Shown: positions 43,322 to 64,000, counted from the stretch's first letter. The stretch: DNA of 64,000 nucleotides from Klebsormidium nitens (GCA_000708835.1 DF237030.1:1-64000), one strand, 5' to 3'. Program-made: numbers and translations. The notes: a model not told the origin generated them from the letters alone.

Positions 43322-46300
43322 ATGGAGTCTCTCATGGCAGCAAGAGCGAGCGCCACATCCTTCAGCCCGGCTGTCCAAAGCCCCGCCATCCAGCGCCCTG
43401 CAAGACCGTCTGCTTTTGTAATCCCAGTAGACAAGAACGGCAAGCTCAAGCGTGCTCACCTTGACAGCTGGCAGCATGACCTGGTGACGAAATCACAACC
43501 TTTGCATGTGCAGACAAAGCAGCATATGACAGCATTCAGTACCCAAGCTGCAGAGAAGTCAGTTTCTCGTGCAAAAGGGCCGCGAGCGGCGTGCCCGTGC
43601 TGCGGGCGGAGGGCGGCACTGCTGGGGGGAGCTGCAGGGCTGTTACTGCCAAACCAGGGGCTGGCTCAGGTGGGGCTAGCTTCTATGCCAGGAAAGCTTC
43701 TAACATTAACGTCAATGATTGTTGGATGTCGGTCAATCGTTAAGCTTGCTGACCAGGGGATGTGCAGACTGAGATACCTCAATGCCCTCAATCGCATTGC
43801 AACGTGGGATGTGAATTGCAAACCAGAATTAGGCAACACTCAAACAGCCAATTGGATCAAAGGCCCCCGACATTCAGATGTCAAGTAAAAAGAGGAGGAG
43901 GGAACGCGTGTTGGCTTTGTGAGAGCATTAATAGGTAGTTTCGAAGGGTTGATGGCTTATAGCCTTGGTGAAGACCTGTTATTGTGCCCTCAGGAGGCTG
44001 CGGCAGCTGCCGCAACACAACCACCTGGGGCACTGCGTCAGTGGTACGAAGAGTTCTTTGCGTTCGGGCTAGCCAAAGGAGGGGCCATATATGAACCAAA
44101 GGTGAGACATTCTGGCCTTTCGCTTCCGACAACCTGTTCATGTCGAGCATCTCTCCCAATTGACCCAGTCTTCCATTGACAGCTGTCACTTGGCTACCGC
44201 CCATAAGTAAAGATTAGTATCATTTGTAGGAGCTTGTTGAAAGTCATTTCACATGCTCATGCTTCTCTCCAGCATGTTTCCAACCTCCTCCAGGATGCTG
44301 ACATCAAACACAGAGTGTGAGTCCAACTCCGATCCGCACTCTTGTAACAGGTCCGGCCGTACAAGGATGCGGTATTCCACCAGCTGCAGGACAACCTTGC
44401 AGAAAGCAAAGCAGCGGATTCAACTCTTGAAGTTTTGGAGATTGTGAGCGACACAAACGCCCCTCTACTTCGAACGCAGGGCATGGATCATGCAATAGAG
44501 GATTGCTTCGACCTAGGTGAAGAAGAGTTGCTGCTGCCATGTCCATCTTCTGCTTATTGGGAAGGGAAAGTGGCATTAGAGGGGGTGCTCGAAGTTGAGA
44601 CTCTTGGCTTTGGGGGTTTGGTAAGACTCTACGAGTCCGCTTAAGGGCAGTGAAAACAGTCTTCGTGGCTTGGGGAAGGGTAGAAACCGGTGTGAAAAAG
44701 CCCTGTGTCAAATGGTGTGAAAAAGCCCTGTGGGAATCTAGGTCTTGGTGAGACGCAAAACCCGTCATATGTCCACACTTCTGACTTTGCGAAACGAATG
44801 AAGCGAAATTCACGACCTGGGCTAAAAGAGCCTAAATAGTCCTGATTGTATCCACAGCTAAAAGCAAACCCTCGTTGGCGACCCCCTTTTTTTTTTCTGA
44901 TTCGCCGCAGGGTGTTGGTCCCGCGCCCAACCTTCATTACTGGGCGGACTGGCCGGGGCGCGTTCATGTGACCGGGGTAGATCGCAACTCTAGCATGGAG
45001 CCCTATGCCCAGGAAAACGCGCACCAACCGGGGCTCGACCGGTTGGCCTTCGACTTCTCCCTGGGGGTACGTTGCGCACCGGATTTCGAGCCCCTCGCTA
45101 GCGCGACTTCTTCTTCTGTCATATGCGATAACGAGTAAAGTTGAATCCTATTGGGGAAGGAGAGCCGTTTATCCGAACCTGTTGACTGTTCGCAAATGGT
45201 TTGCCCCCAAGAAAAGAACGGTTGTCGTCTCTCTGCTCGACCTTGATGTCGGTTCAAAGGACGCCCCCGCCTTATCCTGCCGCTTTCACAGTTGGTCTCG
45301 ATGGGGATTCGCTTTAGATCACTTTCCGGTGGGTGGAACGCATTGACGCATGGTTTTTGATTGCCGTTCGCCCATTTGGAGAACCCGCTCGATCATTGGC
45401 GACTGGCTTCGCCCGCCTCAGCTTTATTTGTAGACTGGCATTCTTTGTTTCCGAAAGTCCTCAATGAACTGCTGAATGCTGCTGTCGCTGACTGGACGAT
45501 CGTATCAGGTCGCAACCTCTTTCACGAGCATCAAACGACTTCTGGGACTCCTCGTTTCCCCGAGAAGGAAGTTCCCTGAGCGCCATTCTTCTCGTGCTCT
45601 GTTCCGGTCCGCTCACAAAATCTTCTGGCGGATCATGCAGAGCGCGGCAGACCTTCCCGTTCCCTCCACGAGCGTCGACGTCGTCGTGGGAACGCTCATC
45701 CTCTGCTCGGTAGATGACGTGGCCCGCTCCCTCTTAGGTGACGTCATCCCTGCTTTATGTGGCGCTTTTTACCGCTGACGCTTTGCCTGCGGTCGCTCTT
45801 TTCCCCTGGACCTCGGTTTCGCTGCGTACTTGACGTGGAAGGGGAGCACTTTGTAAGATCCAGACGCTCATCTCAAGATCAACAATGGGGTCATCAATGC
45901 AGCTCGCTTCGTCATTCCTTGCAAAGACATGCTTGGTCGTGGTGGGTCTTGCTTGTTCAGGCGTCTTCTCAGAGACTGAGTACTATTTGATCTAGCGCTC
46001 ACCGCCGATGCTTCGCCCTTTGCGCCGCATAGGGCATCCGAATAAAGTTGTTACGATCCCAGGAACCCAAGGACAGTCGAGGGTACTTTTTCGCTTCCAA
46101 GGCATCGCTTGCGAGCCTGCTTCTCTTGATTCAAAGTGCACAAGCATCCCGTCCCTAAGGACGGTTTCTTTACAAATGTGACCATCAGCTCGGAGAAAGT
46201 TCGTCATGTTCGGATCCTTTCGTTCGTGCAGAAGTCAGGCGGGTTCTGCGACCGGGCGGCAAATATCTCTTCATTGAGCACGTGGCCGCCCCAGGTGCGT

Positions 46301-46758
46301 TTGCTTCCTCTCCAACGCACATTTTACGTGGCTTGAGTGCCTGAGGGGGGTCGACTCTTCAATTGCGTTTTGTAAACAGTGATTACTGCCCGACGCAACA
46401 GGGTTTGAGACGTGACTGCCACCATTCGGCGGTTGAAAGGCCCGGGCAAGGCGTTGCTCGGCCTGTTGTCACGAAATTAGTTCAAGTCTTGCGTTGGCGA
46501 TGCTTGGCCTACAGCACAAACCTGTGTACTGCTTGTTCTCAATGAAGCGCGTACTGTTGTGCAGACGGGACAGCCCTCCGACAGCTCCAGAACACGCTCA
46601 ATCCCCTGCAGCAAGCGTTGGCAGATGGGTGTCACCTGAACCGAGACACGTTGCAAGCCGTGCGACGAACTGGTTTTGCTTCTGTCGACGCTTCGAGCAT
46701 AAACATAGACGGCCTTAGCCTCCTCGCTCCTCATATTGTGGGCATTGCTACCGCCTGA
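43322..46758 (+). CDS. SAM-dependent methyltransferase (Methyltransf_11, METTL7-like), probably plastid-targeted; 7 exons, about 352 aa
   Basis: Exons 43322-43669, 43994-44101, 44351-44443, 44911-45066, 45641-45737, 46232-46294, 46565-46758. Motifs WYEEFFA, VLEIGVGPAPN, SVDVVVGTLILCSV, EVRRVLRPGGKYLFIEHV, LADGCHLNRD. Confidence 0.88.
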
Positions 46759-48147
46759 TCAGGTGGGGATACTCCACGTCGAGTCCTCGAATTGCGCTGA
46801 TCGAGTCGCAGCTCATCCTTGCTCCATATTAGAAGGGACGGTTGCATATGCTTGGAAATGATGAGCTTGAAGGCTGCAGCATGCTCCATTGAATCACTGA
46901 ATCTGAATCAGTGATCGATAGCTCAAGAGCTATCCAGTGAGCTTTATAATGATTCTGCATCATGTGCGCAATATGATGTACTGAGGACTCATACTACAAT
47001 TGGCGTTACATTGGATAATGACATCCGCTGCACCACTCAGTGAAGCGCGGCGGTGCAAGCATGCAGATTGTTTCTCGCTAATTACTATCAGAGCTCAACC
47101 ACAAGTAGTTTGCGTGCAATCCGAGATCATGCATGCGCGGTCATCATGTGCACGCGATTTAAGCGACTCTAGCGGATTGGATCCGACCGTCCATGCGTTC
47201 TTCTTGCCAGTATGTACGTGCCTCACATGGGCGATATGATCTTAAGCGGCGCCCGCCCTATGTCCGATATCAAATTAACGTGCCATGGCATGTGCGCCAA
47301 TGACGGTCATTCATGTGCCAGGTCCAATGGGTCCATCAATGATGTACATAGCTACTGTAATTAATAGCTCCATTCTCCATGTATTTTGACGGGCACTGCA
47401 ACAACAGTGATACATTATTACTTTCATGTGGTGACCGGCATGCAAATCTCCGGCATGCAATGATGACAACCACTGTCGATTGTGGAAGGCAGCAGCAACT
47501 CTTGGCAGGCCAACAGTGCAGATCGAGTATTTTCAACAGGTAATGTGTTCAGATGCAATCTTACGACAAAGTTTATGCAAGCCCTCCTTGAATGTTCGCC
47601 AAGCAACTCATATCCTAGAGCGACGAGCTGTGGGCGCCCTAAAGTACACATCGCACGACTCGTGCCCTGTATCGCTTTGATTCAAGCGAAGGGACCCAGG
47701 ACTGAAATGAAAAAGCGTCTTGGACTAGTCCTGCAGTTCAGGTCTCAATGGGTGGTTGCGGCAACTGGTTGTGCTGTTGCAGATAGCTGGCAGCTGTCCA
47801 ATTTAAAGGGTAACTGCAAGGAGGCGTCACAACATGGTCAGCTTTGTCTTGGAACAGGGTGAATCACCGAATAGGGTTTGAATCACTGCTGAGAGACTCT
47901 GCCACCAGTCTCAGATCCGTCGACAGGTAAGACGCTGATTACAAACCTGCCCAGGAGGCATTTCCAATTCAGTTACCCACTGACAGAAGTATTGCGAAGT
48001 TGGAGGAAAAACACCCAAGTAAAATACCCTCCACGACCAGATGGTTTTGCAACCTGCCTGCAGAAAACACTGCATGACTTCCTGGCAGTCACGGTTGTAA
48101 AATTTCTTCAACGTACACCAATGGCAACCAATTGCGAACTGCCCAAC

Positions 48148-51100
48148 TCACCCTGGCACCCAGTACCGGCTCCGCCTGCCCCCCCACTTGGGCACTCGTC
48201 GCGGCTTTCGCGCTCCCTCCTGCCGCAGCTCCCTCCGCCCGTTTGCCTCCCTCTCCTCTGCCGCCCGCCCATTCCCCCTCCCCCTGGCAGGCTTCTCGTC
48301 CTCCTCTTCTAACTCATCCTCTGGGGGCTCTACTTTTCGGGGGGGTCCTTCTCGCGGCCACGGGATGTGCGGCGAGGCCGCCTCCTCGTGATCGTCGTGC
48401 CGCCCCCCTTTTCCGCCCCCCACGGCCGCCGACTCTGCCGCGGCCAACGGTCCCGCGCCACTCGGCTCTCGCTCGTCGGGCTCGGCGCGCGCCGCGCCTG
48501 GTTCTCCTGGCACGGGGGACGTTGCTATGCTGGCAGAAACGACCGGTTGCGGGGGGCCGTTCATCGGGGGTGGCGCTTCAGCCGGGGGGGAGGACTGAGC
48601 AGTGTGGCTGCTGCTCGGCCGTGCAGGCGTGGGGGACAACGGAGTAGGCGCCGCCGACAGTGTATCGTCTCCCTCCCGAGGGTTGGAATCGAGCCCCCGT
48701 GCGGACTCGCTGTCTCGCTGCGCGTTCCGGTGCTTCGACGGCGGCCGGCCCCGCTTCTTATTCGGCAACCGCTCATCTCCTCGCATGCGGTCCTCCCCTC
48801 TCCGCCGTTCCGGACTTGCTGGGAGCGATTTGCCCTGACCGGCGCTCACCCCCCGGCCCGGCGCCCTTTCTTCCGTCGTCCCGAGCCGTCGTAGCTCCCG
48901 CACTGTTCCCGCCCCCTGAGGGCTGTCCTCCTGCGCTTTCCGGAGCCTTTCTCGTCGCTCCAGCCTCTCCTCTCCGGGCGTCTGCTTCCGGTCGCCCAAT
49001 CCCCTCAGACTCACGCGCGGCCGCCGTTTCTCTTCCTCCCCCCCCCTCCGCCGCCGGTCGTTCTTCTCGTCCCCCCCCCTTCGATCACTCCTGTCGTCGC
49101 CCCCCCTTCGTCGATCCCTGGGGCTGCCCAAAGCGCTGCGCCGACGCTCTCGCTTCCCGTCCGCTTCGCCGTCATCCTCACTCCGCGTTCGTTTTCTTGC
49201 TCGCGGCGCTTTCTCATTTTCGCCCTCGTCACTCTCTTCCCGTATGACTGCGTTCCGGCCCCCTACTCGCCTGCGCTTCGGCCCGTCTGAGCTTTCGCCG
49301 GACCTTCCCCGCCGCTCCCGTGCGAACCCTTCTTCAGAAGCCGTCCGCTCCGAATCGTTCCCATCAGCCATTTTCTCATGAGCCTCATCGACTGCATGAG
49401 CCGATAGCTGCGGGCTACGCTCGTCCTTCTGGGGGGGCGCCGAAGCCTGTTCAGCCACGCCTTTGAGAGAAGTGCTTTTCCTGACAAACGCGTCTCCCAA
49501 CGAGGCGCTGGCATGGGCCGTCAGCCCGTCTATCGGGGCAGCGTGACTCTGAGCAAAGGGCTGCCTGCTTGGAGAACTTTCATCGAAGCCTTTTGGGCTC
49601 GGAATGTCTGGCGGCTTCTCTACTTTAGTGCCGACAGCAGGTCCGGAAGGTTCCCTCAAGATTTCTCGGGGGTCACCTCTGCCGGATGCCGCAGAAGGGT
49701 GGGAGGGAGATGGCGCCTGGGGCGAGGCGGCAGCCGAAGGCTGAGGTTGCGGAGAGGCTGCCTGGTTTGAGGGGCTGGCGGATGAGGGGGGAGCTTGGTC
49801 GCAGGAAGTGGGAATGCGGAGGGGGAAGCTGTCCAGAGAGTGGGTTCCGAAGGAGATAGCCCTGTTGCAGTGGGATGCATGAAAGATAAGCTGGCAGACT
49901 TGGGGGCGTTAAACCCGCATGGCGCCATGATCTATCCAACACCGGAGGTAAGCATTTAGAGACCACCCCCAGAGCATGTTTCGATAACCTTGACTCTTAG
50001 CGACATCGACGATGTGCAGGCCAGGCAGTGCAGACATCAGACGCAAACCCTGCTCAAAGAACAACCACTTCACATACTCCTGAAATGGCGGCCTTACTTG
50101 TAGTCATATGCGATAGCGTCCCCCTTCCTGATCGGCTCCGTTGCAAAGAGACCAACCCGCAGCTCCCCATCCACCCGCCTGCATAACCCAGCCTCAAATA
50201 AGCAATCTCAGTCAATGCATCCCTACTCCACTCCCTTACAGGCCACTCGACACTTCACATCACCTTGAAAGGTCGCCTGTCTCCTGCTGTCCTAAAAGCG
50301 CTTTACACTGGGCAGAAGACTTGTCGCTAACAAGGATCTATTCTGTGTTGAGGGCACCGATAGACAGATTTTTGAATTCTTAAGTACAGAGGCAGCTTGG
50401 CGCTACCATCTGAACGGATTACTGAAACCTCTCACACAAGCATGATTGTGTGACAGCCCAGCTTGTCCCCGAGAACAACGCCTTGTATTCTAGAAGCTTG
50501 GCCAAGTTCCGGGAAAGTCACGGGTACCACCGACATTTCTGCAACAGACACCGGGACCACTACTTGGTACTCACTGGCTCGTTAGATTGGGAGACAATAA
50601 ATTCCAATGCGGGGAACACGACCGACGACGTTCTCATGGCAAGTATCCTTACGAGATCCTCCCTGTCTGTAAGCGAGCACGCGACTCACCATCTCTGCAG
50701 TTGGCAGTTCGGCCGTGCGGAGTGCGGAACAAAGCGGCTAAGGTTTCCCTTGTAGTAAGCGTCCAAGACGAAGGAGTCGTCAAGCTGACACAAGTGTCGA
50801 TTGTGAGCGCCCCGCCGCTCGAGCGCCGAGATGCGCTGGTGGCACAGCGCGGAATCCAACACTGGGAAAAGCGGAAAGGAGGGGCGTGAACTCTTGTGAG
50901 CAGCTTGAGTCACATGCCGATCTTATCCGTAACTTGGAAGGTGCGGATTCAAACAGCCATCGATTCAAAATACTTGCTTATCAGCTGCCCCAATAGTAGG
51001 CGAATAGGCCTGCATTCAATGAAGTTCGAACACAACTCGAATTGCGAGAGGCGATGGTCAGCGGAGTGCTAATTTTGGGTCTGACAACACAGCGGCTGTG

Positions 51101-54100
51101 CGTTCATCTCAACAACAGAAGTGAGGTCCTGTGATCTGACATATAACAGATACCTAAGAATGAGCCTGCCTTGGAGGAAGATGACAAATTCGAATACCCT
51201 TCCAGGGCTCTTCTGGAACATCGTTGTCATTGTTACACACTCCATTCAAGCTTGTAACATATGCTGATACCGCTCGCTCCTGTTACTAAGCCCCATATGA
51301 TGATAAAGTGTGCACTAGATCACATGAGCTCCTTTTCCATTTGCCCCATGTCATAGTTTAGAGCTCTGCAAACGAAACAACCATCGGAACAGCAGCCGCT
51401 GTCCAAGCAACCGTCGCTCACCTTCCCCTACGTACTCCACAACAAAGTCCTCAGCTGCAACGTCCTCCCCTGCCCCCACAGTCCATTCCGACTCCCGAAC
51501 CTGCAGGACGGAAAAAGACTTGCTCAACCAATAGCCTTAGCTTCCACATTCTATCGTCCATAATCGTCCAACTTGATACCGGGCGGATCCAACAACTCCG
51601 CCCCAAGCTTCGCTACTGATCGTCCAGTCCGTCGGCATTCAATCTGAGCTGTACGATTGTGTTGGAAGGAAATTCTAGTCAACATTCGATGTGAGGCAAC
51701 TTCAAACATGGCCCGGCAGGTACAGAGTGACTGCGATTAGCATACCTTCTCAGAAGGCACACTCATACAAGCGCTGCTGTACCACGATACTTCTCACACA
51801 ATGGCCGAGTTGCTAGGCACAATGTGTGGCCGGGTAATTCTGGTTACAAAGCGCGACCGGCCCCGCTGGCCGACATCAATCATTGGACCCCCTACTAAAC
51901 GAACTCTTCTTCCTACGTTGAACTCGAAATTCGAAATTGAACAAGCTCCTTGTCTGCCGCGGCAGCGCAATTCGCTGCCAGGTCAATCAAGTGTTTGGTA
52001 TTAGTTGGAGGAGCTCACCTTGTGAAGCTCTAGCTTCTTGCTGGCAGCAAAGGACGGGGCCGCCTGAGCGGCGGGGGCACCGGACCCAGGGCTATGACGG
52101 ACCAACCACTCATCTGGAAAAAGCCAATCGTATCCCTTTAGTCATCATAGGAATGAGTGTGCACTGATCCTTCTCTTCTGCTACAAACTACCTCAAAGTA
52201 CTCATTTACTCTCAAAGTCCCATCCAACATTGGGTGGTGTAAGATGGCTCGCCATTTCAGCGAGAAGTTCTTGACAGTAGTCAAATTGCGCTAAGTAATT
52301 CAGTCCGCAGCAGCTTCCCGAAGATGCTGTGACCTGACAGCTGAATGTGCGAAGAGATTGATGTGACCACATTAGAGATTGCAGGATTGCCCCGTGGCGA
52401 GCCTTGCACCTGGACTAAGTGAACCTGTCCAGTAGAATCATCATTACGCTAGCTGCTTGCCATTGAAGCAAACTCGGTCCGCAGGAGCTCGTTTTCGAAG
52501 ACTCAAAAGGTGCCTATAAGCTTCCAGTAAGCCACAAACGGTTGCTTTGCTTGTGTTTGCTCTGAGGCTTTGCAGGAAAAATCTGAGGCTCTAGCTAGAC
52601 GAACTCGCCTGTAGTAGCCTGCTTTGGAATGACTCCTGACAGTAGTCTCAGAAACTGACCAGAGTCCCTGGATAGCCTAGAACCCTTTTTGGCACGAGAG
52701 ACGGTAAACCTCTTTCTTGAATTCCGAACTTCCACGATTGACAACCTTCTCTGTCTTCAACGTGCACAATCCTCTGATAGAAAACAGTGACTGTCTAAAC
52801 AAGTCCGGGTCCCTATCTCAGCTGTCCCCCACTATTCCTGCAAAAAACTACACACCTTCGTTGTTTCACACAATCTACAAAGACCACCACATAGGACACT
52901 CGAGACACTCACTGTGATCAATGTGAATGTAAGGCGGGTTCTCTGCATCACGTCCCTCCCCCATCAGCATTCCCCCAGTTGCACCTCCATCCTCAGGTAA
53001 CCCCCTCCCCCGCTCTCGGTCATCGTGCTCGTCTCTCCCATTTTCCCCCCTACCTGCATCCATTCCCGCATCCTGCCCGTCACTACTACCCGCCTGTTCT
53101 CGTACTCCATACCTTTGCTTTTTTACTCTTTTTGCCTGCCTCTCCCCCGCATCTGCTCCCCTCTCGCTCTCTTCCCAGCCCCGCTTGTTCCCTGAAACCT
53201 CTGGTTTCGCGCTCTCGTTCCTAGCGCCTGTGTCCACTTTCTTGGTGATCTCTGGAACTCCTTCTGGAGTCACTTCCTGCACACTACTGCTCGCTGGTTC
53301 TGCCTGGACCTGGCCCACCCCATGCGGACGCAGAACGTCCTCTTCATCGTCCGAGTCACCAGCCGCCACTTCGGGCGGCAGTTCAAAGTCAATCTCGACT
53401 AGGGGGACCGCCAGGCGCCCAAAGACCTCAGCAACGCTCTTTGTTTGAGGCAATTTCTGTGAAATGCAAAGGTGAGTATGAGCACAAGGTGTATGCGGAG
53501 GCACAACGTTGGACGAAACCCTAAAAGCTGGATACCACCAATGATTATCAAGGTGTGCTCACATTCCGCCCTTTTGTTGATCAACTTCATATGAAAGTCA
53601 GATCCCCACTTTTGATGCACATATCGCTATTTCACAGATGTTCTGATCTTCGGGGGTTTACTGCAATCATCACTTGGGAAGGTTCCTGCAATCCATCACT
53701 GACATCAAAAAGAACCTTGCTTTGACAAACCGAAGCGGATGCCGAAGCGGATGCGCACCTTGGGCTGCCTCTTCCAGTCCGAGTCGTGCCGCCAGCAGAT
53801 GCAGTGCGAGGGAATCTCCTCCAAGAGGTGGCTTCCCTCAGGGGCGCATTGCTCATGGTATGCCACTGGACAGAGAAGGCACTTGTGAAGCTTGGAGGCA
53901 CGCATCTGGTGATGACAAGCCCTGCAGCTGTGCTGAGGGCACACTAGGTGGTCCTCATTTGGACCGCCCCACGTGACACCTTCCAAATCTTCCACGCAAG
54001 CCTCGTGGAAGAACTTGGCACAGTCTCGTCGGCTACAGACAATGATGTCTCCCCCAGGAGCCGTGCTGCCCATCTCCTTGCAGGCAAAGCACTCCACCTG

Positions 54101-55139
54101 CAGGAGTGAATGCGGAGGGAGTAAGTTTGCATGAAAGTGTGGTGGCAAGCTCAAGTAGAATAAAAGCTGGAGGTAAAACAGTGCCCTAAGTTCAAACATT
54201 TACCTGCTCTGCACCCACGCCCACCCTGAACCCCCTTACTAACCCATCCGTCCCAGGCAGGTTAAGCATAGGGTAACGTGCAGGGTAAATCGCAAGGTAA
54301 CCAGCATTTCTCAAGGAGACTAAAGTAGTCGGGTTGTGCTGTGCGCACCCTGCTGAACAGTGTCTATCAAAAGTGATTCACTCGGGCTTGACAGGATGTG
54401 TTCTGTAGCTACTCAGATCTACTCATTGCCAGCTTCTAAATCAAGTTCCTCCTATGGAGATTGCAGGGTTGTTCTGCAAATCAGCCACATTGCAGAAATG
54501 AATTCTTCTACAAGCAAGCACATAAAAGGCTGAGATATAGTTTCAGAGATGACACAAAGGATGAACAACTCAGAGAGAAGGTAGACTTTAAGGAGCAGGC
54601 AATGTCAAATGCCATCAATTTCTCGCCAGAAGTGTTGAACCAACAGAATGGGAGGGACAGGTTCAAAAGATGCAGCCAGCAAACCAGTGACATCCAGCTT
54701 CTGCACAAGTCTGGTTCAATGCCTCAAAGACCTCACCTTGGCCTCACGGCAGTCGGGACAAATCCACTCCTCGTCATCTGGGGCTTCATTGGAGCCAAAA
54801 CTGCAAAAGCGAGGAAGAGTTACAGGAAGTCGTTAAGGCTGGAAGCGCAGCAGATACGCTCTCAAGGAAACACTGAACAATCACCCTTACCGCTCTTGAC
54901 ATGACTAGTCCGCTGGTTACCCAACTGACATGCTTCCTTATGCCCTGACCCATGCAGGCAGAGGCGGTAGAGAAGCCTCTTGCATGCATGTCGGGAGCGC
55001 ACCATTGCTCGTCGATATGAAAGCCTTTCTTGCACAGGTCACAGTACACGAGCTCCCCCAGCTCGCTGCACACTGCGCAGATCCACGAGAGTGCCCCATC
55101 GTCCTTCTTCCGCAGAATCTCCTCCAGTTCCTCGTCCAT
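48148..55139 (-). CDS. ASHR3/NSD-like PHD-PHD-SET paralog, predicted catalytically dead, with a long charged disordered tail; 9 exons, about 1074 aa
   Basis: Exons 55139-55003, 54800-54737, 54097-53759, 53456-52913, 52113-52019, 51500-51422, 50861-50690, 50178-50098, 49861-48148 total 3225 nt in frame. PHD CAVC..CDLC..FH..C..WICPDC; ASHR3-type module CPQHSC..CLLCPVAYH..CWRHDSDW; SET remnants FVVEYVGEV, KGNLSRFVPHS, IAYDY. The 3' end may include a further exon. Confidence 0.82.
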
Positions 55140-56375
55140 GCTTATTCTTCCGTGCCAAGTTCAACCTGATCCAAGAAGCCTCCTACAGCCATTGCCCTCG
55201 GCCTCCCTCTGATGGGGCGCTGTCAATGAGACCAGCGCCGCAAGAGAATGAAAGAAAACGGAGAAAAAGGAGCGCATATGAGTTTTCAACGCAGCTTGAA
55301 GAGAGAGGCGGCTTCTACAGGGTCATTCCTTTGGAACCTGCAACCCTGGCGTCTCGAAGATGAACCAAACAACGTGCCGCCCTTCCGCTGCTCAATTTCA
55401 AAGCTCTTGCTGGAAATGGAACTTTTGAAGAAATGAACGAAACATGGGGACTGTCGATTCACCTCGCAAACTAGAGGCAGAAAGGCAGAAACTACCTATT
55501 CAGGACAGGCTGAAGCGACAATCACAACGAATGAGGAGCTGCCACCGTGTCAAGCAGCTTCAAGCATGAACGGTTCAGATGAAGCTCATCTTGAATCTAA
55601 CGGGCTTGCTTCGAAATGCAAATATCTCCCCGCCATATGATATGGTCGACTCCAGCCCATGTGCAAGCAGAAGGGCGCCAGCACTGGCAGCTGAAGGCTG
55701 ATCAGGAAGCTCCTCCTACCAGCAGAGACGGTGTCCCTCTACGGGCTCCTCTACCAGCAAGTGCCAGCAAGTGCCCCTCCACGGGCTCACCACTTGTACT
55801 AGCGAGTTGGGAGCAAGGTGCTCTATTTCTAGTCAATCAAGCCGCTGTCTTCGTTTCGTCTTCACGAAGCCAATTTTGGTATCTTTCTTTGATTACACAG
55901 AATTATGAGGCTGTTGTGACGCCGAGAAGGTGAAGAGCGCTGAAAAGCGCAAACAGGACACCCTCCTTTGCTTGAAGTTCTTCTTCCCTGCTAAGACAAC
56001 CGCTGGCAGGAACCGCTTGATGGTGTGGTGCTCCCTTTTGCATCCCAACTATCTGTCCCAGTTTGAGGTTCAATAAATAGCTCGGAACCGATGCAACTGC
56101 TCGGAAGCGATGCAACTGCTCACTGCTGCTTGCATTCCAAGCTGAACAAGTATTTCAAGGGCATTCGTAGCCTCCTGAATTGACTTGAGTCCCTGCCTGA
56201 AGGTGGTGTGGACTGAACCTTGATGCAGCTTAGGTTCAATTAGGTCCGTTTCTGTCGGATCAAGGAGAGATGACTGCCGCGCCAATGCTAGCCTCTTGAT
56301 TTGTGGCTGCACCTGCGCAGTTCAAAGATCTACCGTAGGTATAAGTCCTAGCATTGGAGTGAGCTGCGCTCAGCA

Positions 56376-59300
56376 ATGTCTTTGAAAGCAGTGCAAGCCG
56401 AGCTTGTGGCATGTCGAGAGTGCAAAGCAGTGTTCACAGTTGATGCTGTGGCTTTGAAAAGCCTCCTCCATCCAGGGGAGTGGCACTGTGGAAAGTGCTT
56501 GCAAGGGAAGGTGAGTCTCCTGGCCCTCTCAGAGCAAGTTCTTTTTCCCCAAAGAACCACTAGATCCAGTCAATTACCTGGACGGTAAACTTACAACGCG
56601 TGATGTCTGTGCGACGTCAGAATATGCCTATTACTAAGGCTACTTGTCACGGTTGTAATGCAAATCATGACGCTGCTCGATTGACAACAAAGCTCTCCAT
56701 CTAAGTCGCTTCTGGAAGAGGAACATTTGAATGATTGGTCTGAAGCCACCGTCGGCGATTAGATTACTCCAATCTACCTGATTCCGGAAAAGACCGCTCT
56801 GATTGGTTCCCAGATCAAGTGCCCCTTTGCCCCTGCAGAAGCTCACTGAGGCAGAAGTTTGTTTGCTTAGAGACTGCTTGATTTACCACGAATGCATCAC
56901 GCTGCCAACCTGCACTGCTCAATTTTCGGATGACATGGCATTTGGGGCACCAGTATTTCAGCCACTTTTTGTTTTGAGAGTGTGGTTCCTCTAGAGCCTT
57001 TGTATACTTTCTGACAAAAGCTGCTGATGGAGGAGTGCCATGTGCTTTACTCTACACTGAGGCCCCCTCCGATGCAACACCTGGCAGCCCGCTCTTATCA
57101 ACCCATTCCAGATTTCTCGAGCCCTCATAGCAGCACACCAGGGCATGTATTGTGTGGCTCGAAATTTTCGCAGGTTCCGGATAAGCCCACACTTGTGTTT
57201 CACTGCGAAAGTGAGCCCGGGCTTTGTTTTCAAGATGACACCACCTTTCATACATTACAGCTCTCATAGATGTCCAAGGTTCCCACTTCTCTTTGTAGCA
57301 CAGACAATATAGCAGAGATCTCCGGAGCTGATGACCATACTGAATTCTCTACTGCAGGTGCGCTGCTTTTCCTGTGGCGACCTCGCCCCCACGCGATCCA
57401 CCGTCCAGTGCAGCCACAAAAACTGCACCAACTCTTTCCACCCTAGTTGCGCTGATCTACTCCCAAAACCCTCCCCCCACGAGCCCCTCACGAAAGGCCA
57501 CACGCCCCCCCCTTTTGTGTGCCCCCACCATTTCTGTGCGGAGTGCAAGGGGACCAAAAGCCTTCTACTCTGCTCTGGATGCCCTGTGGCTTATCACGCG
57601 CGGTGTTACCCTGGGGGAAAACTGGAGAAGAGTGGGTCCAGCAATTGGGTGAAGTGTTTCCGGCATGACGAGGACTGGAAAGTTGAGAACCTGGTAAGCG
57701 CCGCCCCAGGTTGTTCTGGACAGTCCAAGCCACGCAGCTTGGAGGCAAATGGGCAATAGTTTCCTTTCCACTTTTGGGCGTCAACCAGAGCTCCGATGAA
57801 ACAACATCCTTGTCATGGGTAACATCCGAGTAGAGTCTTGATTCCTGAATCATTCAAGCTTTGGTTGGATTGCTCAGCTGCAAGGGTTTGCGTGTAAGGG
57901 GTCTCTTATCTTGTCCATTTGCCGAGCCCGATGTGAACACGAACAATGTGTCTCAGGCTGCCCTACCATGTGCTCAATTCTCGCCAAAGCCCAGAGATTT
58001 CCGTCGACTTTTGTATAAGCAGACTTTCCCCCTCTCTTTGTCCCCTAACAAATGCCGAAACAAGACAATGCCACTTCACCCTGACAAGCCCTCTCTCATG
58101 TGCCAGACTGCCCCCCCAAGCACTGGCGTAAGGGACGCCTTTGAGCGACTACCGCTTCCCCCCAAGAAAATCGACTTCCGAGTCCCCCGGCAACTGCAAG
58201 AAGCGGTAAAAAAACTGGCGGAGCAGCCCCCGCTCTACCAGCACATAAAGCGGAGTATCCTCAACGGCAGCCTGATTGTTGATGCCTTTCATTGTTGGTC
58301 GTTGTTGTCTTTTCGTATCCCTCCGGACTTCCTCACTTCCTCGATTTGCATTGCTATGGAGAAGCTGGGCCAGTAAATATCAGTAATTACCCAACCCGAT
58401 ACTGGAAACCGAACACATTTCGATCTGCGTTTTAGTGATAGTGTCTAGTGGGTGGGAAGGCAACTTTGCGGAACTACTAAGCCGCCAGTGCTGCTCTTGA
58501 AGTCAATTGCGCTTTGAAGTGTTTGCTCCTTTGTTGTACGGTGTCCACCGGAGGCGTTCTCCCATCCAGTCCCTCGAGCTTCAACTTGTCTCTTGTCCGA
58601 GTAGCTTTGTTACGTAACTTGAAATTTGCATCTTGGTCGCATTGTCATTCTGGCACATGGTCATCCGCATAACTAAGACGAGCTGCCCTTGTCAGGCAGC
58701 AAATTTTTTCCTCATTGGGCGAGCAAAACAGTTTCGTTTCTGTTGAGCTCCTTGACCGTTGTCCTCAGACGTGTGGGTGATTCCCAAGCCGAAGAGCAAG
58801 GGTCGGGAGGACGAGAGCATCGAGCGCTGCGACTGCAAAGCGGGGGCCGCTGCAGACGCATGCGCGAAGGACTGCCTTTGTAGGTGAGGATAGATGATGC
58901 CGATGTCACACTGTCGAAAGCACCTGTCTTTTGCGCTCAGTGAAAGCTGGACCTTTCTGGTATGTCGTAAATGACGTGTTTCTCAAAGGGTTTTGAATGA
59001 TTGGGCGTCATACATGGTTGCAGCCAATGCTTGTCCATCCTTCAGATACTTAGGGTGCTTCTAGGCAGCGCAATCCCTTGCGCCGATGCTCGTATGCACT
59101 TTGCAAAGCGCTTTTCCCTGAGAGTCCTTCTTGATTCTGTCTCGACCCGCTCCGACCAGAACAAGAGCAGACCCGCTCAGATCCACATCGCCTAATTCGA
59201 TGGTTCTGTGCAGCTTGTTGTTCATCACCTGCTCCAAGGAGTGCGGCTGCTCCCAAGGCTGCCAGAACGTAGCCTTCCAGAAGCGCGTGGTGCCAAAGTT

Positions 59301-62300
59301 GAACCTTGTCAAGGTGCGGACCGACGATTGTAGGCTTGTCTTTCCTGTGTAACTTCGGTCTCCGAAGCATCTTGTTTGTTGCTGCAAAGCTGACCAAACC
59401 TTGGACCATGCTCGCTGGTCTTCAGCTGCGAAGGTGCATAAGAAAACCGTTTCGTTTCTCGGGCGTCAGAGCGAGCACGAGTCCTTTTCTGATTTTGACC
59501 AGCCGTCCTGTAGCGTTTGTGAAGAATCTTTGCGAGCATCTTTTTCAGGAGTTTTGTCAAGGAATCTTAGAAGAGTCATCAATGTGCACTGGCTTCCGCT
59601 TGTTGCGCACGTTGCGTTGTTTGGTTACTTCTACCAGAGACTGATGCGAAAAGCAGCTGCATCGTGGCAGGAAGCGTCAAAGCGATTTTTTTTGTTGATC
59701 GAGCATTGGCAGATGAAGATGCCGAAATTGAGTAGGTGATTTTTATCCATGACGTTCAGCAAGAAGTGCGCTTGCACTTGGTTTTCGTACGTTTTCTCGC
59801 TTTAATGATAGATACCCATCTCTCTCGGGGGAGAAAAAAAGACGGTTTCGGACTGGCGAACTTGAGTAGATGTTTCTCAACCATGGCGTTAAGCACGACG
59901 TGCGACATGTCCACCCGTCTCTCGTTTCTGGTACGCATGTTATTGACCTTTGTGCACTTGGCTGTCGCAGACGGAGGCGTGTGGGTGGGGCATCGAAGCG
60001 GGGCAGGACATTCCGGCCGGCACCTTCTTGGTGGAGTACACGGGGGAAGGTGAGGGGCCGGAGCAGCGGCGGGTCTTCTAATCATGGGAGTTTACGTCAC
60101 ATTTGCCGAGCCGAATCAAAGATCGAGCCGTGATTTGCAGTGTTGCGCCATCAAACTGCCTTTCATCAACGGTTCAAGTTTGGGAACACCCTCCTGAAAC
60201 GTAGCAGAATTGACGCAAACAGCTGTGAATGACAGCAGCAAGAGACTGGCGAGGACTTGAAAGTACTCTCGGAGACGAAATCAGAAAGAGAAAATCCAAC
60301 GCTGGCAAGTTCGCTGGAAGGCACTGTTGATTCTTGAAGAGACGGTCGAAGTGATGCACTGGAAGCCGATTCTGACTGGTGAAGTCAACGCTTTGAAAAC
60401 GACCTGTCGCCCCCAGATTCCTGCTAACGTATGCCAACGAGAATGTTGAAGAAATTGATCGTGCTGCAAATCTCACTCAGCGAGATCCCATTCGATCCTG
60501 GGAGCGCAACCAGGTAGTAGCCACTCTCCAGAATTCGCACGCCCTGTTCAACTCATGAGTGGTACAAAGCACATGTTGGGCCCCCATTGGACCGCCATTG
60601 ACAAGCTCGTCCTCCGCTCAATAGAATCCCTCGAAATTTTAAAGCCTAAACATCAGCCAGAGGTTCACGAACTGTATGTTCCGCCCCGCAGTGATTGACG
60701 ACAAGCTGTGCGAGGAGCGACTGTGGCGCAAGAAGGAGGCGGGCGAGACCAACTTCTACATGGTCGAGGTCACCCGCAACATGGTCGTTGATGCCGCGGA
60801 GAAGGGCAACTACGCACGCTTTGTAAACCATTCGTGCGAGCCCAACTGCGAGCTGCAGAAGTGGTGAGCGCCGGACTGGGTCGCGCTCGAAGCTGGACCT
60901 TTGATGAGCAAGGCTGCATCACCGTGTGTCAGGATTGGCGAGGTTACATTCGACGAAATGATGGCCGGCTGGGTCTTTGCGTGTTAAAGAGCAGTTGACG
61001 AAGGTGAAAGCATCGACAGATCCCCGGTTTCCAGCCCATTTTTGCAGAGTGCGATAGTGAGCTGGAACGTGAGAATGTGCATGATTTTATGATCTGTTTT
61101 GTATCGAGAGTGATTGAAGCCGTAGGCGGAGAACGAGGACGATACTCTTCATATTGAAATCCCGTGCCGGTGAATATGATCAGATGCGATTGAAGGTCAC
61201 AAAAGCCCCGCGCCCTTTTGGGTATGGCCAACGTGAGGTCCACATCGGTGTGCTGCCATGAAGCGCAAATCCTGACTGTCAGGGAGAAACGCTAGGGAGA
61301 AACGTTAAACTCTGAAGTCCAATGAGTCTTATGAAGGTGGCCGTAAGGGCGGCAGGTCGTGGAAACAGTACTAAAGTGCTCGAGCCTACGTAGAAGCCAA
61401 GAAGTACTCCGGTTGAAATAAAGCTACGAAGTCCCTTCGAGAGGGCGCCTGTTTGCTTGCGCAAATCCTGAGGAGCTATCACTCGACAGCTTGCTTCGCA
61501 GACGAGGCTGCCACATTTTCTAAAAGGCCCTAAAGGTTGTTCCATGCTTAAGTTTGATCTGAGTGCTTGTGCAATATTTCCCTCCCCATAACGATCGAGT
61601 CACAGCGTTGCTCGACTCTGAGACGGCTCGAGTTTTCTGGATTTCAGGCAAATAGATGGGGAGACGCGGATTGGCATCTTTACCACGCAAGACGTGAAAC
61701 AGGGGACTCCATTGGCGTACGACTACCAGTAAGGGCCTCGCATGACCCTGACCTGTCAGTCTGCAATCTGCTAGAGCTTGATAGCACCCTCTATTCAGCA
61801 AGCGGCGTTCTCAAATGCTCATAGCATGGAAACAAACGAAACGCCGCCCAACATTGGTTCAACGTGATAAAGAATGATGGTCGTGCGTCGCGCGGACACG
61901 CTTTCGGACAGGATGGTCCGTGGCCCTTTCCGCATGAGATTCAGTTGCGCGAGCAAGTACGGATTCTTCTCGGTGCAGTCTCTTTATTGTTGACCCTTCG
62001 CTTTTGCGGCCTTCTTTGCTAGGGTTGCTTCAGCCTTGCCGGTTCTGTCCGTCCATTGCGAACTGTGTTGAGCATTGCAGACCTGATACTTTTTATGCAT
62101 CGCAGGTTTGTCCAGTTTGGAGCGGACACGGAGTGCCGGTGCGGTTCCGCGCGCTGCCGGGGTCGCCTCGGAAAGACCGCGCCGTCCGAGGACGGACTGA
62201 ATAAAGCGAACGGGGGCCGGCTGGTCCAGAAAAAGGTGAATAGAGGGCCTCAGAAACTATGAAACACTGCTCGATGAAGGATTTTGAAGTGGGTGTTGAA

Positions 62301-63650
62301 TGTGAAAATGCTTGAGCTGGAGGAACGAGGGTTGCAAATGCAGCCCCCTTGGTCAGAAGCGACTGTCTCGACTCTCGCAGATTGCGAGAGATTGAACATC
62401 GTTCGGAGCTCTTTGGAGCGAGGACTTTTCAGGGTGGATACAGAGAGTCTCCGAAGCATATTAAGATGGAACACATTGAAAGAGGAAGACTTAGAGGGAA
62501 GGAGACACGATCGCGATAAAAGCTGCGTCCCCGGCAGCTTGCAAGAAAGACGGTTGGCTCCTCCAAGCGTCGTGTACGTCTCGAAGCGCTTCCAAAGCGC
62601 TTTAGAAAAGCGATATTATAACGTCTCCTTCATCCTGTGGCCCTGTGCAGATCAACGAGATGTTCCCGCAAAGCAAGGAAGGGGCTAAACGAAGGCTCAG
62701 TGGTAAGTAGTGATCACCATGCATTCTTGGAAACTTTGGAGCAACCGCTGATGGCACTTGAAAACGGTTGAGCAGCGAGTCGATTCCCCAACCGTTTGCA
62801 GGTCATCGTCCTAGATTTTGATCCAATCGGAAAAGCCACAGAATCATTTGATTCCCAGTAAGAGACTGGTGGATCTCAACATTGGGATGAACTGAAAGCG
62901 TAACGTCTCCACAATTCGCAGCGGTTCCTTGTCGCACAAGGCGCTGAGCATCTGAGCGGGAATGCCCTTTAAAGCTCTGACGACCATGCCCATTGTAGCG
63001 AAGTGTTTCAGAAACGGAAGCAATCTCACGAAGCACGCGCTCTATAAGGTGTACAACAACGGCGTGTCAAAAGTCGGACTGGAATACGGCTCCGAAAATC
63101 TGATCTCATCGCGTTGGCTCTGCAGCGAAAGTGTTGCGAAAACGTGCGGAGCAGCTCAAGGCGGCCGAGGACCTGGTGGGCAAACGCGTGGAGGTCTGGT
63201 GGCCGTTGGATCAGATGTGAGCGCAATTCTATAACCCGTTATTTCAGAAAGGAAGACCTAATCTTCGTGTCGTGACTCGTGGCCCTTTGACTTCTAAACG
63301 GGGAATGGAGGCAATTATTTAATCTTTCTATCTTTCAGAGGAAAAGATAGAATCTGTTTTCCGTTGGTTAATTATCTACTCTCCTGCGCTTCTGAGCCTT
63401 GGCTTATAAAAGCCATTCCCACAAAAGTCGAGAAGACGGATTATGAATCTACATCCACAATCTCATGTGCTGACTTCCGCACTCTGGGGCAGGTACTATG
63501 GCGGTGAGGTCGTTGCCTACGACGCCGAGCGAAGGCTGCACCGGGTGCACTACGACGATTCGGAGGTGGAGTGGGTGGACCTCGTCAAAGAGCGCCACAG
63601 CATCGTCAAACCTGCCATGGCGCCCGTGCTGCCGTCCCTCTCCACTCCTA
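56376..63650 (+). CDS. ASHR3: ASHR3/SDG4-like (NSD class) histone H3K36 methyltransferase, PHD-AWS-SET-postSET, with a C-terminal Tudor domain; 3' end probably outside the window
   Basis: Exons 56376-56510, 57358-57693, 58107-58254, 58769-58883, 59214-59313, 59971-60049, 60692-60863, 61648-61728, 62106-62235, 62651-62702, 63126-63216, 63493-63650. Motifs CPHHFC, CFRHDEDW, HIKRNVWV, AWS CDC..C..DCLC, CGWGI, ARFVNHSCEPNC, LAYDY, post-SET CRCGSARC. The start codon is uncertain. Confidence 0.88.
58255..58768 (+). other. Putative U12-type (minor spliceosome) GT-AG intron
   Basis: 5' site GTATCCTC matches RTATCCTY. Branch site TCCTTGAC at 58749-58756 has its A 13 nt before the 3' end. All other donors in my gene models look U2-type. 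Confidence 0.72.
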
Positions 63651-64000
63651 GTGAGTTTCGCTATCGCAAAATGCTCAACAGAAACTTCCTTTTGACAGGC
63701 TTTAGATTGCTCAGTTAGGCTGCGGTTATGCTTCCAGCGAGCTCCCTTTTGCGACTTTTGCTTTCGACGAAGAACCTCGCGGTTGACAGCCTTGATGAGC
63801 GCAGCTGAATTGAGACGTAGCATTAGGAAACACTGACGGGGAGAATGTCTCTGGGTAGGTTTCGGCGAATATTTATGCGCCACTAGGTCTCAAAGCAGCC
63901 TCAATCAACAGCCTCCTTTACCCTCCGACAGAAGGACGCCTTTAAGGGCCATTAAGCAAAAGGTCTCTTCGATGCGAACCCCTAAAGCTTTCTCTCTCCA

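Follow-up and report, generated by a model that had tools for sequence, protein, structure and literature searches.

A maintained, noncanonical SET paralog is paired head-to-head with an ASHH3/ASHH4-type gene in Klebsormidium nitens

A 64,000-nucleotide stretch of the Klebsormidium nitens genome (GCA_000708835.1, DF237030.1:1-64000; here called the window), which is eukaryotic, intron-rich and about 51% GC, carries between positions 48148 and 63650 two divergent, head-to-head genes for PHD-SET proteins. We refer to the minus-strand gene as LEFT and to the plus-strand gene as RIGHT. The evidence presented here gives good support to LEFT being a maintained, noncanonical SET paralog, in which the ligands for cofactor and zinc have been replaced or deleted and the remainder of the protein is held under purifying selection. 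From the pattern of residues lost and kept, we consider it probable that LEFT is a pseudo-methyltransferase that contacts chromatin with its three PHD fingers and its AT-hook and uses its SET fold as an interaction surface. RIGHT does not belong to ASHR3 proper: judged by its domains, among them a Tudor domain at the C terminus, and by its place in the tree, it is best read as an ASHH3/ASHH4 (SDG7)-type gene, and it is the probable histone H3 lysine 36 (H3K36) methyltransferase and intact enzyme of the pair.

The paralogy of LEFT and RIGHT is evident from both sequence and gene structure. In BLASTP the two proteins match over the SET region (43% identity over 122 amino acids, E = 5e-35) and over the PHD region (35% identity over 189 amino acids, E = 4e-24), phmmer scores the SET regions at 116 bits, and the positions and phases of the introns coincide. 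The three SET exons measure 79, 172 and 81 nucleotides in both genes, and the PHD exon is 339 nucleotides long in LEFT versus 336 in RIGHT. At the AWS position, however, LEFT has one exon of 95 nucleotides whereas RIGHT has two of 115 and 100 nucleotides, and PHD1 is interrupted in LEFT by an extra intron that is absent from the single PHD1 exon of RIGHT. When compared with solved structures, the RIGHT SET exon finds its best matches in NSD3, NSD1 and NSD2 (E = 1e-16), and the LEFT SET exon in ASH1L (E = 4e-07); a single LEFT exon scores 22.5 bits against the Pfam SET model.

GXG, YXG and NHXCXPN are the defining motifs of SET enzymes (PMC7412744). We examined conservation in an alignment that runs from AWS to post-SET and holds 151 sequences, namely 148 homologs and three LEFT orthologs. 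Of the 80 columns that reach 85% conservation or more in the 148 homologs, RIGHT keeps 69 and LEFT 42. The losses in LEFT are concentrated on cofactor and zinc ligands and are not scattered. The GxG motif reads GWG in RIGHT (59983-59991) and EWT in LEFT (51480-51488; EWS in the ortholog on contig L002), such that both glycines, which are 99% conserved among the homologs, are replaced by Glu and by Thr or Ser. The NHSC motif lies within RFVNHSCEPN in RIGHT (60817-60846) and RFVPHSARPN in LEFT (50707-50736); its Asn and Cys, present in 100% of the homologs, become Pro and Ala or Arg in the LEFT orthologs, with the His retained. The F-Y-M motif, whose Tyr is 99% conserved, is changed to (R/W/M)-H-L in the LEFT orthologs (NRHL in LEFT versus NFYM in RIGHT). 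All eight conserved Cys columns of AWS are deleted or substituted in LEFT and kept in RIGHT, and the post-SET CxCx4C motif that follows YDYK is found in RIGHT (as CRCGSARC in exon 62106-62235) and is absent from every LEFT ortholog. In alignment columns, LEFT has lost G283, G285, Y327, N350, C353, the AWS Cys and the post-SET Cys, the same set in all three orthologs. The NHSC cysteine and CxCx4C together form the post-SET zinc cluster, which closes the cofactor and lysine channel; all four of its ligands have been lost together, as is expected once the site is abandoned.

Despite these losses, the framework of the domain persists. LEFT keeps EYxGE, R314, D338, KGN, RF, the His and Ser of NHS, PNC, W362, G..R.G.F and YDY (its third SET exon still encodes AYDYK), and the core of the SET fold (EYxGE, KGN..RF, PNC..W, G..R.G.F and the Tyr of xDY) is present in LEFT and RIGHT alike. 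An initial annotation of this locus, made by reading the sequence, had proposed two divergent paralogs starting at 55139 and 56376, with equal SET exons and nearly equal PHD exons. It had further described the GWG, NFYM and RFVNHSCEPN replacements, the disappearance of the AWS cysteines and the post-SET motif, and a LEFT frame that stays open over 1,074 codons with its PHD modules and SET fold residues. The BLASTP matches, gene models, translations, Pfam searches and 151-sequence alignment bear out this description.

LEFT comprises nine minus-strand exons with an open frame of exactly 1,074 codons, from the ATG at 55139 to the stop at 48150-48148. The model was assembled from open stretches and splice signals, and RNA contigs were compared with it over 49900-55899. 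The runs that supplied these contigs carry only the label 'RNA?', but the contigs do not represent genomic DNA, because they join exons at canonical splice sites. Seven of the eight LEFT junctions appear as CT..AC joints (GT..AG on the minus strand) without a differing letter, in contigs from up to four runs and four studies, and the eighth is represented by a loose contig end that matches the acceptor near 49861. Thus, LEFT is transcribed and spliced. Contig depth is 44-250 over the LEFT exons, with occasional intron contigs at 2-12; these depths are no basis for ranking genes by expression. The low-depth contigs lie within the introns at 50150-50718, 51056-51339, 52147-52384 and 54256-54763, and are unspliced precursors or intron retention.

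The protein encoded by these exons begins with a PHD1 finger that retains all eight zinc ligands. Its fifth and sixth ligands are spaced as H-x4-C where H-x2-C is the norm, a spacing kept in all three orthologs. The double finger of exon 3 matches PHD_NSD and PHDvar_NSD in Pfam with E = 2.6e-13 and 4.3e-09, respectively. It is followed by a charged linker of 181 amino acids that ends in the conserved pre-AWS motif PPYIHIDH, by the cysteine-free remnant at the AWS position and by the degenerate SET domain. The tail, of about 570 amino acids, includes an AT-hook (KKRGRPPSK, 48733-48759), and several of its blocks are invariant across three lineages, among them the AT-hook and a C-terminal peptide ending in RYWVPG. 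The last exon as a whole gave no Pfam family match; it is 64.6% GC, of low complexity and rich in Arg, Glu, Pro and Ser.

A search of 1.8 billion representatives returned a fragment, P0001, that is 93% identical to the LEFT PHD exon. The 49.7-kb genomic contig that bears it (L001), from a related species, carries both genes head-to-head. There the LEFT ortholog is intact at 1,073 amino acids, with the same splice sites, in-frame insertions or deletions in two exons (+3 and -6 nucleotides) and, apart from one residue (NWHL for NRHL), the motifs of LEFT in the window. Between the window and L001 the exons align and the introns do not. A search with the last LEFT exon added one further relative, P0152 (42% identity), on metagenome contig L002, where the LEFT ortholog is again intact (1,186 amino acids), has the same exon lengths and sites except at exon 5 (107 versus 95 nucleotides), reads EWS, NMHL and RFVPHSRRPN, and has no post-SET motif.

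Ratios of nonsynonymous to synonymous substitution (dN/dS), calculated by the Nei-Gojobori method (NG86), reveal strong constraint on LEFT. Between the window and L001 (dS 0.50), dN/dS is 0.143 for the whole gene, 0.067 for SET (bootstrap range 0.02-0.14), 0.05 for PHD2/3 and 0.09 for the distal tail; against L002, where dS is saturated (1.5-1.8), it is 0.16-0.18 for the whole gene and 0.11-0.16 for SET. The corresponding values for RIGHT between the window and L001 are 0.076 for the whole gene, 0.039 for SET and 0.26 for exon 1, which encodes a degenerate PHD1. The LEFT SET domain is therefore constrained almost as tightly as that of RIGHT. In the SET tree the LEFT stem branch measures 2.0 changes per site compared to 0.67 for RIGHT, and the terminal LEFT branches are very short, a shape that points to a burst of change followed by stasis. 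Residue loss, purifying selection on SET (dN/dS 0.07-0.16 in three lineages) and spliced transcripts are thus found together in LEFT, the combination expected of a pseudo-enzyme. The initial annotation had taken LEFT for a spliced, maintained gene whose arrangement with RIGHT could be sought elsewhere by synteny; the RNA-type contigs from four studies, dN/dS values far below 1 and the head-to-head pair in L001 agree with each of these points. An ordinary pseudogene is ruled out by the intact open reading frames, the splicing and the dN/dS values.

The coding sequence of RIGHT starts at the ATG at 56376 and has at least 12 plus-strand exons extending to 63650, each border of which is GT..AG. 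Its model rests on exon-only conservation in L001, where the exons alone are conserved with equal lengths and splice sites, on colinearity with the full-length homolog P0004, and on the lengths of RNA contigs. In two runs, rightward contigs reach exactly 1,095 nucleotides past 55899, which equals 611 (to the exon-1 donor) plus 336 plus 148; this extension is consistent with the splicing model, short of proof. The same arithmetic suggests that the 5' untranslated region (UTR; 55474-56375) is unspliced, and at about 700-900 nucleotides it appears unusually long. Because the frame is open (phase 1) at a conserved donor after 63650, RIGHT must have at least one further exon, which probably lies beyond the window; no terminal exon was found in 63651-64000.

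Among the modules of RIGHT, PHD1 is the one that has decayed. Only four of its eight zinc ligands are left, the losses being the first CxxC, the His and the Cys after it, and this degenerate state, missed in the initial annotation, is conserved in L001 (7851-7985, minus strand). The C-terminal exons align to the Tudor domain of P0004 and are conserved in L001; in Pfam they match PF21743 with E = 4.5e-06 and 26.8 bits, which on a partial exon is just below the cut-off of 27.2 bits. Since PHD1 is degenerate in RIGHT and kept in LEFT, the domain losses of the two genes are complementary: LEFT lacks AWS, post-SET and the cofactor residues and has a whole PHD1, whereas RIGHT has the catalytic motifs and a degenerate PHD1. 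The coordinates of both genes and of the interval between them are collected in Table 1.

Table 1. Coordinates of LEFT, RIGHT and the interval between them in the window
Feature	Position	Strand	Evidence
LEFT gene, 9 exons (5' end ~55371-55413; coding sequence to stop)	48148..55413	-	gene model and spliced RNA contigs
LEFT coding exons 1-2, PHD1 with all eight zinc ligands	55003-55139 + 54737-54800	-	model; comparison with ASHH3-type PHD1
LEFT exon 3, 339 nt, PHD_NSD + PHDvar_NSD double finger	53759..54097	-	Pfam
LEFT exon 4, 544 nt, acidic/charged linker ending in pre-AWS motif	52913..53456	-	model and RNA
LEFT exon 5, 95 nt, remnant at AWS position, no cysteines	52019..52113	-	RNA, model, alignment
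LEFT degenerate SET, exons of 79/172/81 nt	51422-51500, 50690-50861, 50098-50178	-	RNA, model, alignment
LEFT last exon, 571 codons and stop, without post-SET zinc motif	48148..49861	-	model
Minimal gap between outermost leftward and rightward RNA contig ends, core of the probable bidirectional promoter	55414..55473	.	contig ends
Wider zone between transcription starts	~55371-55668	.	contig ends; alignable with L001
RIGHT gene including long 5' UTR, at least 12 exons	55474..63650	+	model, L001 conservation, P0004 alignment
RIGHT exons 1-6	56376-56510, 57358-57693, 58107-58254, 58769-58883, 59214-59313, 59971-60049	+	model
RIGHT exons 7-12	60692-60863, 61648-61728, 62106-62235, 62651-62702, 63126-63216, 63493-63650	+	model
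RIGHT exon 1, degenerate PHD1 remnant	56376..56510	+	comparison with ASHH3-type PHD1; L001
RIGHT exon 2, 336 nt, PHD_NSD + PHDvar_NSD double finger	57358..57693	+	Pfam
RIGHT AWS, two exons of 115 and 100 nt, all conserved cysteines	58769-58883 + 59214-59313	+	model, alignment
RIGHT SET and post-SET	59971-60049, 60692-60863, 61648-61728, 62106-62235	+	model, alignment
RIGHT C-terminal exons, PTM/DIR17-like Tudor	62651-62702, 63126-63216, 63493-63650	+	Pfam, P0004, L001

The two start codons are separated by 1,236 nucleotides, and the transcripts begin much closer together. The 5' ends of LEFT RNA contigs fall at 55371-55413 and rightward contigs begin at 55474-55668, placing the two transcript starts about 60-250 bp apart. 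The zone between them is alignable with L001 and includes short, near-identical blocks. LEFT and RIGHT probably share one bidirectional promoter and may be co-regulated. We found no E2F-type site (TTTSSCGC) in the intergenic region, and the count of such sites across the window is that expected by chance. No repeats or tandem arrays were detected in the introns apart from the paralogous SET exon itself.

In the SET tree, both genes fall within a streptophyte PHD-SET clade (support 100/99), so that the prospect raised at the outset, that they might belong to unrelated SET classes, does not hold. Its two branches are ASHR3 (99/99) and an ASHH3-type clade (91/85), the latter with Chara, RIGHT and LEFT among its members. 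The combined PHD and SET tree (380 columns) instead presents a trichotomy of LEFT, ASHR3 and an ASHH3-type clade with RIGHT and Chara (86/87). In approximately unbiased (AU) tests, grouping LEFT with RIGHT costs 0.0 log-likelihood units (lnL) on SET and 2.4 on PHD+SET (p = 0.47 and 0.17), and grouping LEFT with ASHR3 costs 1.0 and 0.11 (p = 0.27 and 0.47). Both genes lie outside the ASHR3 clade (support 99-100%), and their domains differ from those of land-plant ASHR3, which has neither Tudor nor PHD1: RIGHT has a Tudor domain and LEFT a PHD1. RIGHT carries every ASHH3-type module except a functional PHD1, with clade support of 86-91%, and LEFT shares the PHD fingers alone. ASHH3 deposits trimethylation on H3K36 in Arabidopsis (PMC11204290).

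Both genes had at one stage been filed as ASHR3. A region search with a fern homolog had returned land-plant proteins named ASHR3/SDG4, and a first tree, in which LEFT, RIGHT and P0004 were sister to ASHR3, lacked ASHH3-type sequences; adding these overturned the placement. The named relatives of P0004 are ASHH3/ASHH4 (SDG7/24), and the ASHH3-type proteins of Chara, liverworts, mosses and ferns carry PHD1, PHD2/3, AWS, SET, post-SET and Tudor. The matches listed by the homolog searches included no annotated full-length protein of this genome. The ASHR3 label of the initial annotation, taken as membership of that clade, consequently fails for both genes. Its description of RIGHT as the active parent of LEFT goes beyond the trees, as the AU tests reject neither LEFT+RIGHT nor LEFT+ASHR3. 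LEFT is most simply regarded as a highly diverged member of the same superclade that would have arisen as a local inverted duplicate, although an older origin is possible.

Comparison with the known families of this superclade places the peculiarities of each gene. In the ancestral three-PHD form of ASHH3/ASHH4 (Chara braunii CBR_g41442, Marchantia MpASHR1, Physcomitrium 'ASHH3'), PHD2/3, AWS, SET, post-SET and a PTM/DIR17 Tudor follow in the same order as in RIGHT, which differs by its degenerate PHD1. LEFT shares with this form the arrangement of an N-terminal PHD1 with PHD2/3 and the pre-AWS motif, but AWS, post-SET, Tudor and the cofactor residues are missing from it, and the long AT-hook tail is its own addition. 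Land-plant ASHR3 (SDG4), which shares the PHD_NSD and SET superclade, resembles LEFT in having no Tudor; unlike LEFT, it keeps all catalytic and zinc motifs and has no PHD1. NSD1/2/3 and ASH1L, which supply the best solved-structure matches for the SET exons and whose PHD_NSD/PHDvar_NSD fingers are matched by the PHD exons, are distant outgroups in the tree, have no plant Tudor tail and are all catalytically competent.

Taken together, these data support the following model of how LEFT arose and what it may do. LEFT would have arisen when a gene of the streptophyte ASHH3/ASHR3 group, with three PHD fingers and AWS-SET-postSET, was duplicated in inverted orientation. A burst of change would then have stripped SET of its two flanking zinc clusters, AWS and post-SET, the latter together with the Cys that bridges to it from NHSC. 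The same burst would have replaced the residues that hold S-adenosylmethionine (SAM), namely the two GxG glycines, the FYM Tyr and the NHS Asn, and purifying selection has held the protein nearly constant since then. What remains are the residues of the SET beta-fold, three PHD fingers, the pre-AWS motif and a long conserved tail with an AT-hook. The PHD fingers would bind histone tails and the AT-hook DNA, and the inert SET fold would be an interaction surface, used to scaffold or modulate other factors. We infer both the loss of catalysis and the reader or scaffold role. Two points weigh against this model: LEFT still has the catalytic Tyr (YDY) and the NHS His, and the catalytic domain of SUVH9, a protein that had long passed for inactive, is required in vivo (PMC8168562), for which reason calls of 'dead by sequence' can be wrong.

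These same points bear on the possibility that LEFT is still an active methyltransferase, for histone or non-histone substrates, that holds SAM in an unconventional pocket. Retention of the catalytic Tyr and of the His, EYxGE and the fold residues would fit such activity, as would enzyme-like constraint on SET and the SUVH9 precedent (PMC8168562). However, residues that are 99-100% invariant in the 148 homologs have been replaced (the GxG Gly pair, Tyr327, Asn350 by Pro, and Cys353) and SET has lost its zinc modules on either side, among them the post-SET module that closes the cofactor and lysine channel, and we regard continued activity as quite improbable. Decay of LEFT as a pseudogene, or an artefact of the gene model, is far more improbable still. 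The loss of canonical motifs and a low-complexity, GC-rich last exon are what such decay might leave behind, but LEFT is spliced and expressed, its frame is unbroken in each of three lineages whose divergence spans dS values from about 0.5 to above 1.5, its splice sites are identical across lineages, and its dN/dS is 0.14-0.18. An alternative that concerns origin, and that we hold to be possible though not favored, is that LEFT descends within the Klebsormidium lineage from an old ASHR3 branch or an older split, the pair being an ancient tandem whose members became ASHR3 and ASHH3 elsewhere. The PHD+SET trichotomy, in which LEFT+ASHR3 is the cheaper grouping, and the absence of Tudor from both LEFT and ASHR3 are in its favor. 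Set against it are the SET-only tree, which places LEFT with the ASHH3-type clade and where LEFT+RIGHT costs nothing, the N-terminal PHD1 that land-plant ASHR3 is missing, the long branch and odd composition of LEFT, which make it prone to basal pull, and the adjacency and identical intron phases of the two genes, which fit local duplication.

A further alternative treats LEFT and RIGHT as one split system, in which LEFT would target RIGHT or control it allosterically, acting as a heteromer or decoy, with both genes expressed together from the shared promoter. To this system LEFT would bring an intact PHD1 and the AT-hook, and RIGHT catalysis and the Tudor domain. DNMT3L with DNMT3A and METTL14 with METTL3 offer parallels for an inactive paralog that controls an active one. 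Such a system would account for the complementary domain losses, the closely spaced transcript starts in an arrangement kept in L001, the constraint on both genes and the presence of contigs of both in four of four runs. On the other hand, neither a RIGHT exon (in L002, exon 1) nor RIGHT similarity was found within the 1.86 kb upstream of the LEFT ATG at which the L002 and L004 contigs end, and the adjacency of the genes may be a mere leftover of duplication. On balance we judge this alternative unlikely, and its strictest form, an obligate heteromer created by complementary degeneration under one promoter, in which the inert LEFT SET would target or allosterically control the H3K36 methyltransferase, slightly more doubtful.

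The favored model, LEFT as a maintained pseudo-methyltransferase, has precedents among chromatin writers, whose inactive paralogs are often targeting or regulatory subunits of active enzymes (SUVH2/9, DNMT3L, METTL14, Set3/MLL5). Set3, MLL5, SETD5 and UpSET combine a PHD reader with a non-catalytic SET kept by selection and act as scaffolds of deacetylase complexes, the same concept as that proposed for LEFT. They belong to an unrelated SET subfamily, and the resemblance is one of concept. SUVH2 and SUVH9 of Arabidopsis, which act in RNA polymerase V recruitment, are plant SET paralogs described, like LEFT here, as inactive and retained for a targeting or adaptor role. In neither of the two is the post-SET region present or the cofactor pocket complete. 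SUVH2 and SUVH9 differ from LEFT in belonging to another SET class, SU(VAR)3-9, and in carrying SRA instead of PHD fingers; they are not known to be paired with an active paralog, and their inactivity is itself debated (PMC8168562).

Conservation also extends past the LEFT stop. About 600 nucleotides on the 3' side of it (47518-48097, core 47743-47860) are alignable with L001 at 73% identity, and a 121-nucleotide block of this region is 78.5% identical in the distant L002, where it lies about 200 nucleotides past the stop. The block may be a conserved element of the 3' UTR or a small unrecognised exon. Further downstream of LEFT, blocks at 46215-46766 are kept in the same order in L001 and L002, so that a gene next to LEFT is in synteny across the three lineages.

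A survey of SET proteins in Archaeplastida lists, without further analysis, a 'Class II-Orphan' SET protein for Klebsormidium (PMC5725981). This protein may be LEFT. In our literature searches, the single paper that names both Klebsormidium and ASHR3 deals with an unrelated subject, and no inactive-paralog partner emerged for green-lineage enzymes of the H3K36-type ASH1/NSD/ASHH class; we know of none. Inactive SET proteins are already a known class, to which LEFT most likely adds a member from a new subfamily. The locus offers a clean candidate, being expressed, with an apparently inert SET domain under constraint in at least three Klebsormidium-like lineages, and physically linked to an intact paralog whose lost PHD finger, PHD1, is preserved in LEFT. 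Should the obligate heteromer prove real, LEFT would, to our knowledge, give the SET2/NSD class its first inactive partner of the DNMT3L or METTL14 kind. Klebsormidium lies near the base of the streptophytes, and the pair is also informative about the diversification of the ASHR3 and ASHH3 families, with their reader domains, in the time before land plants.

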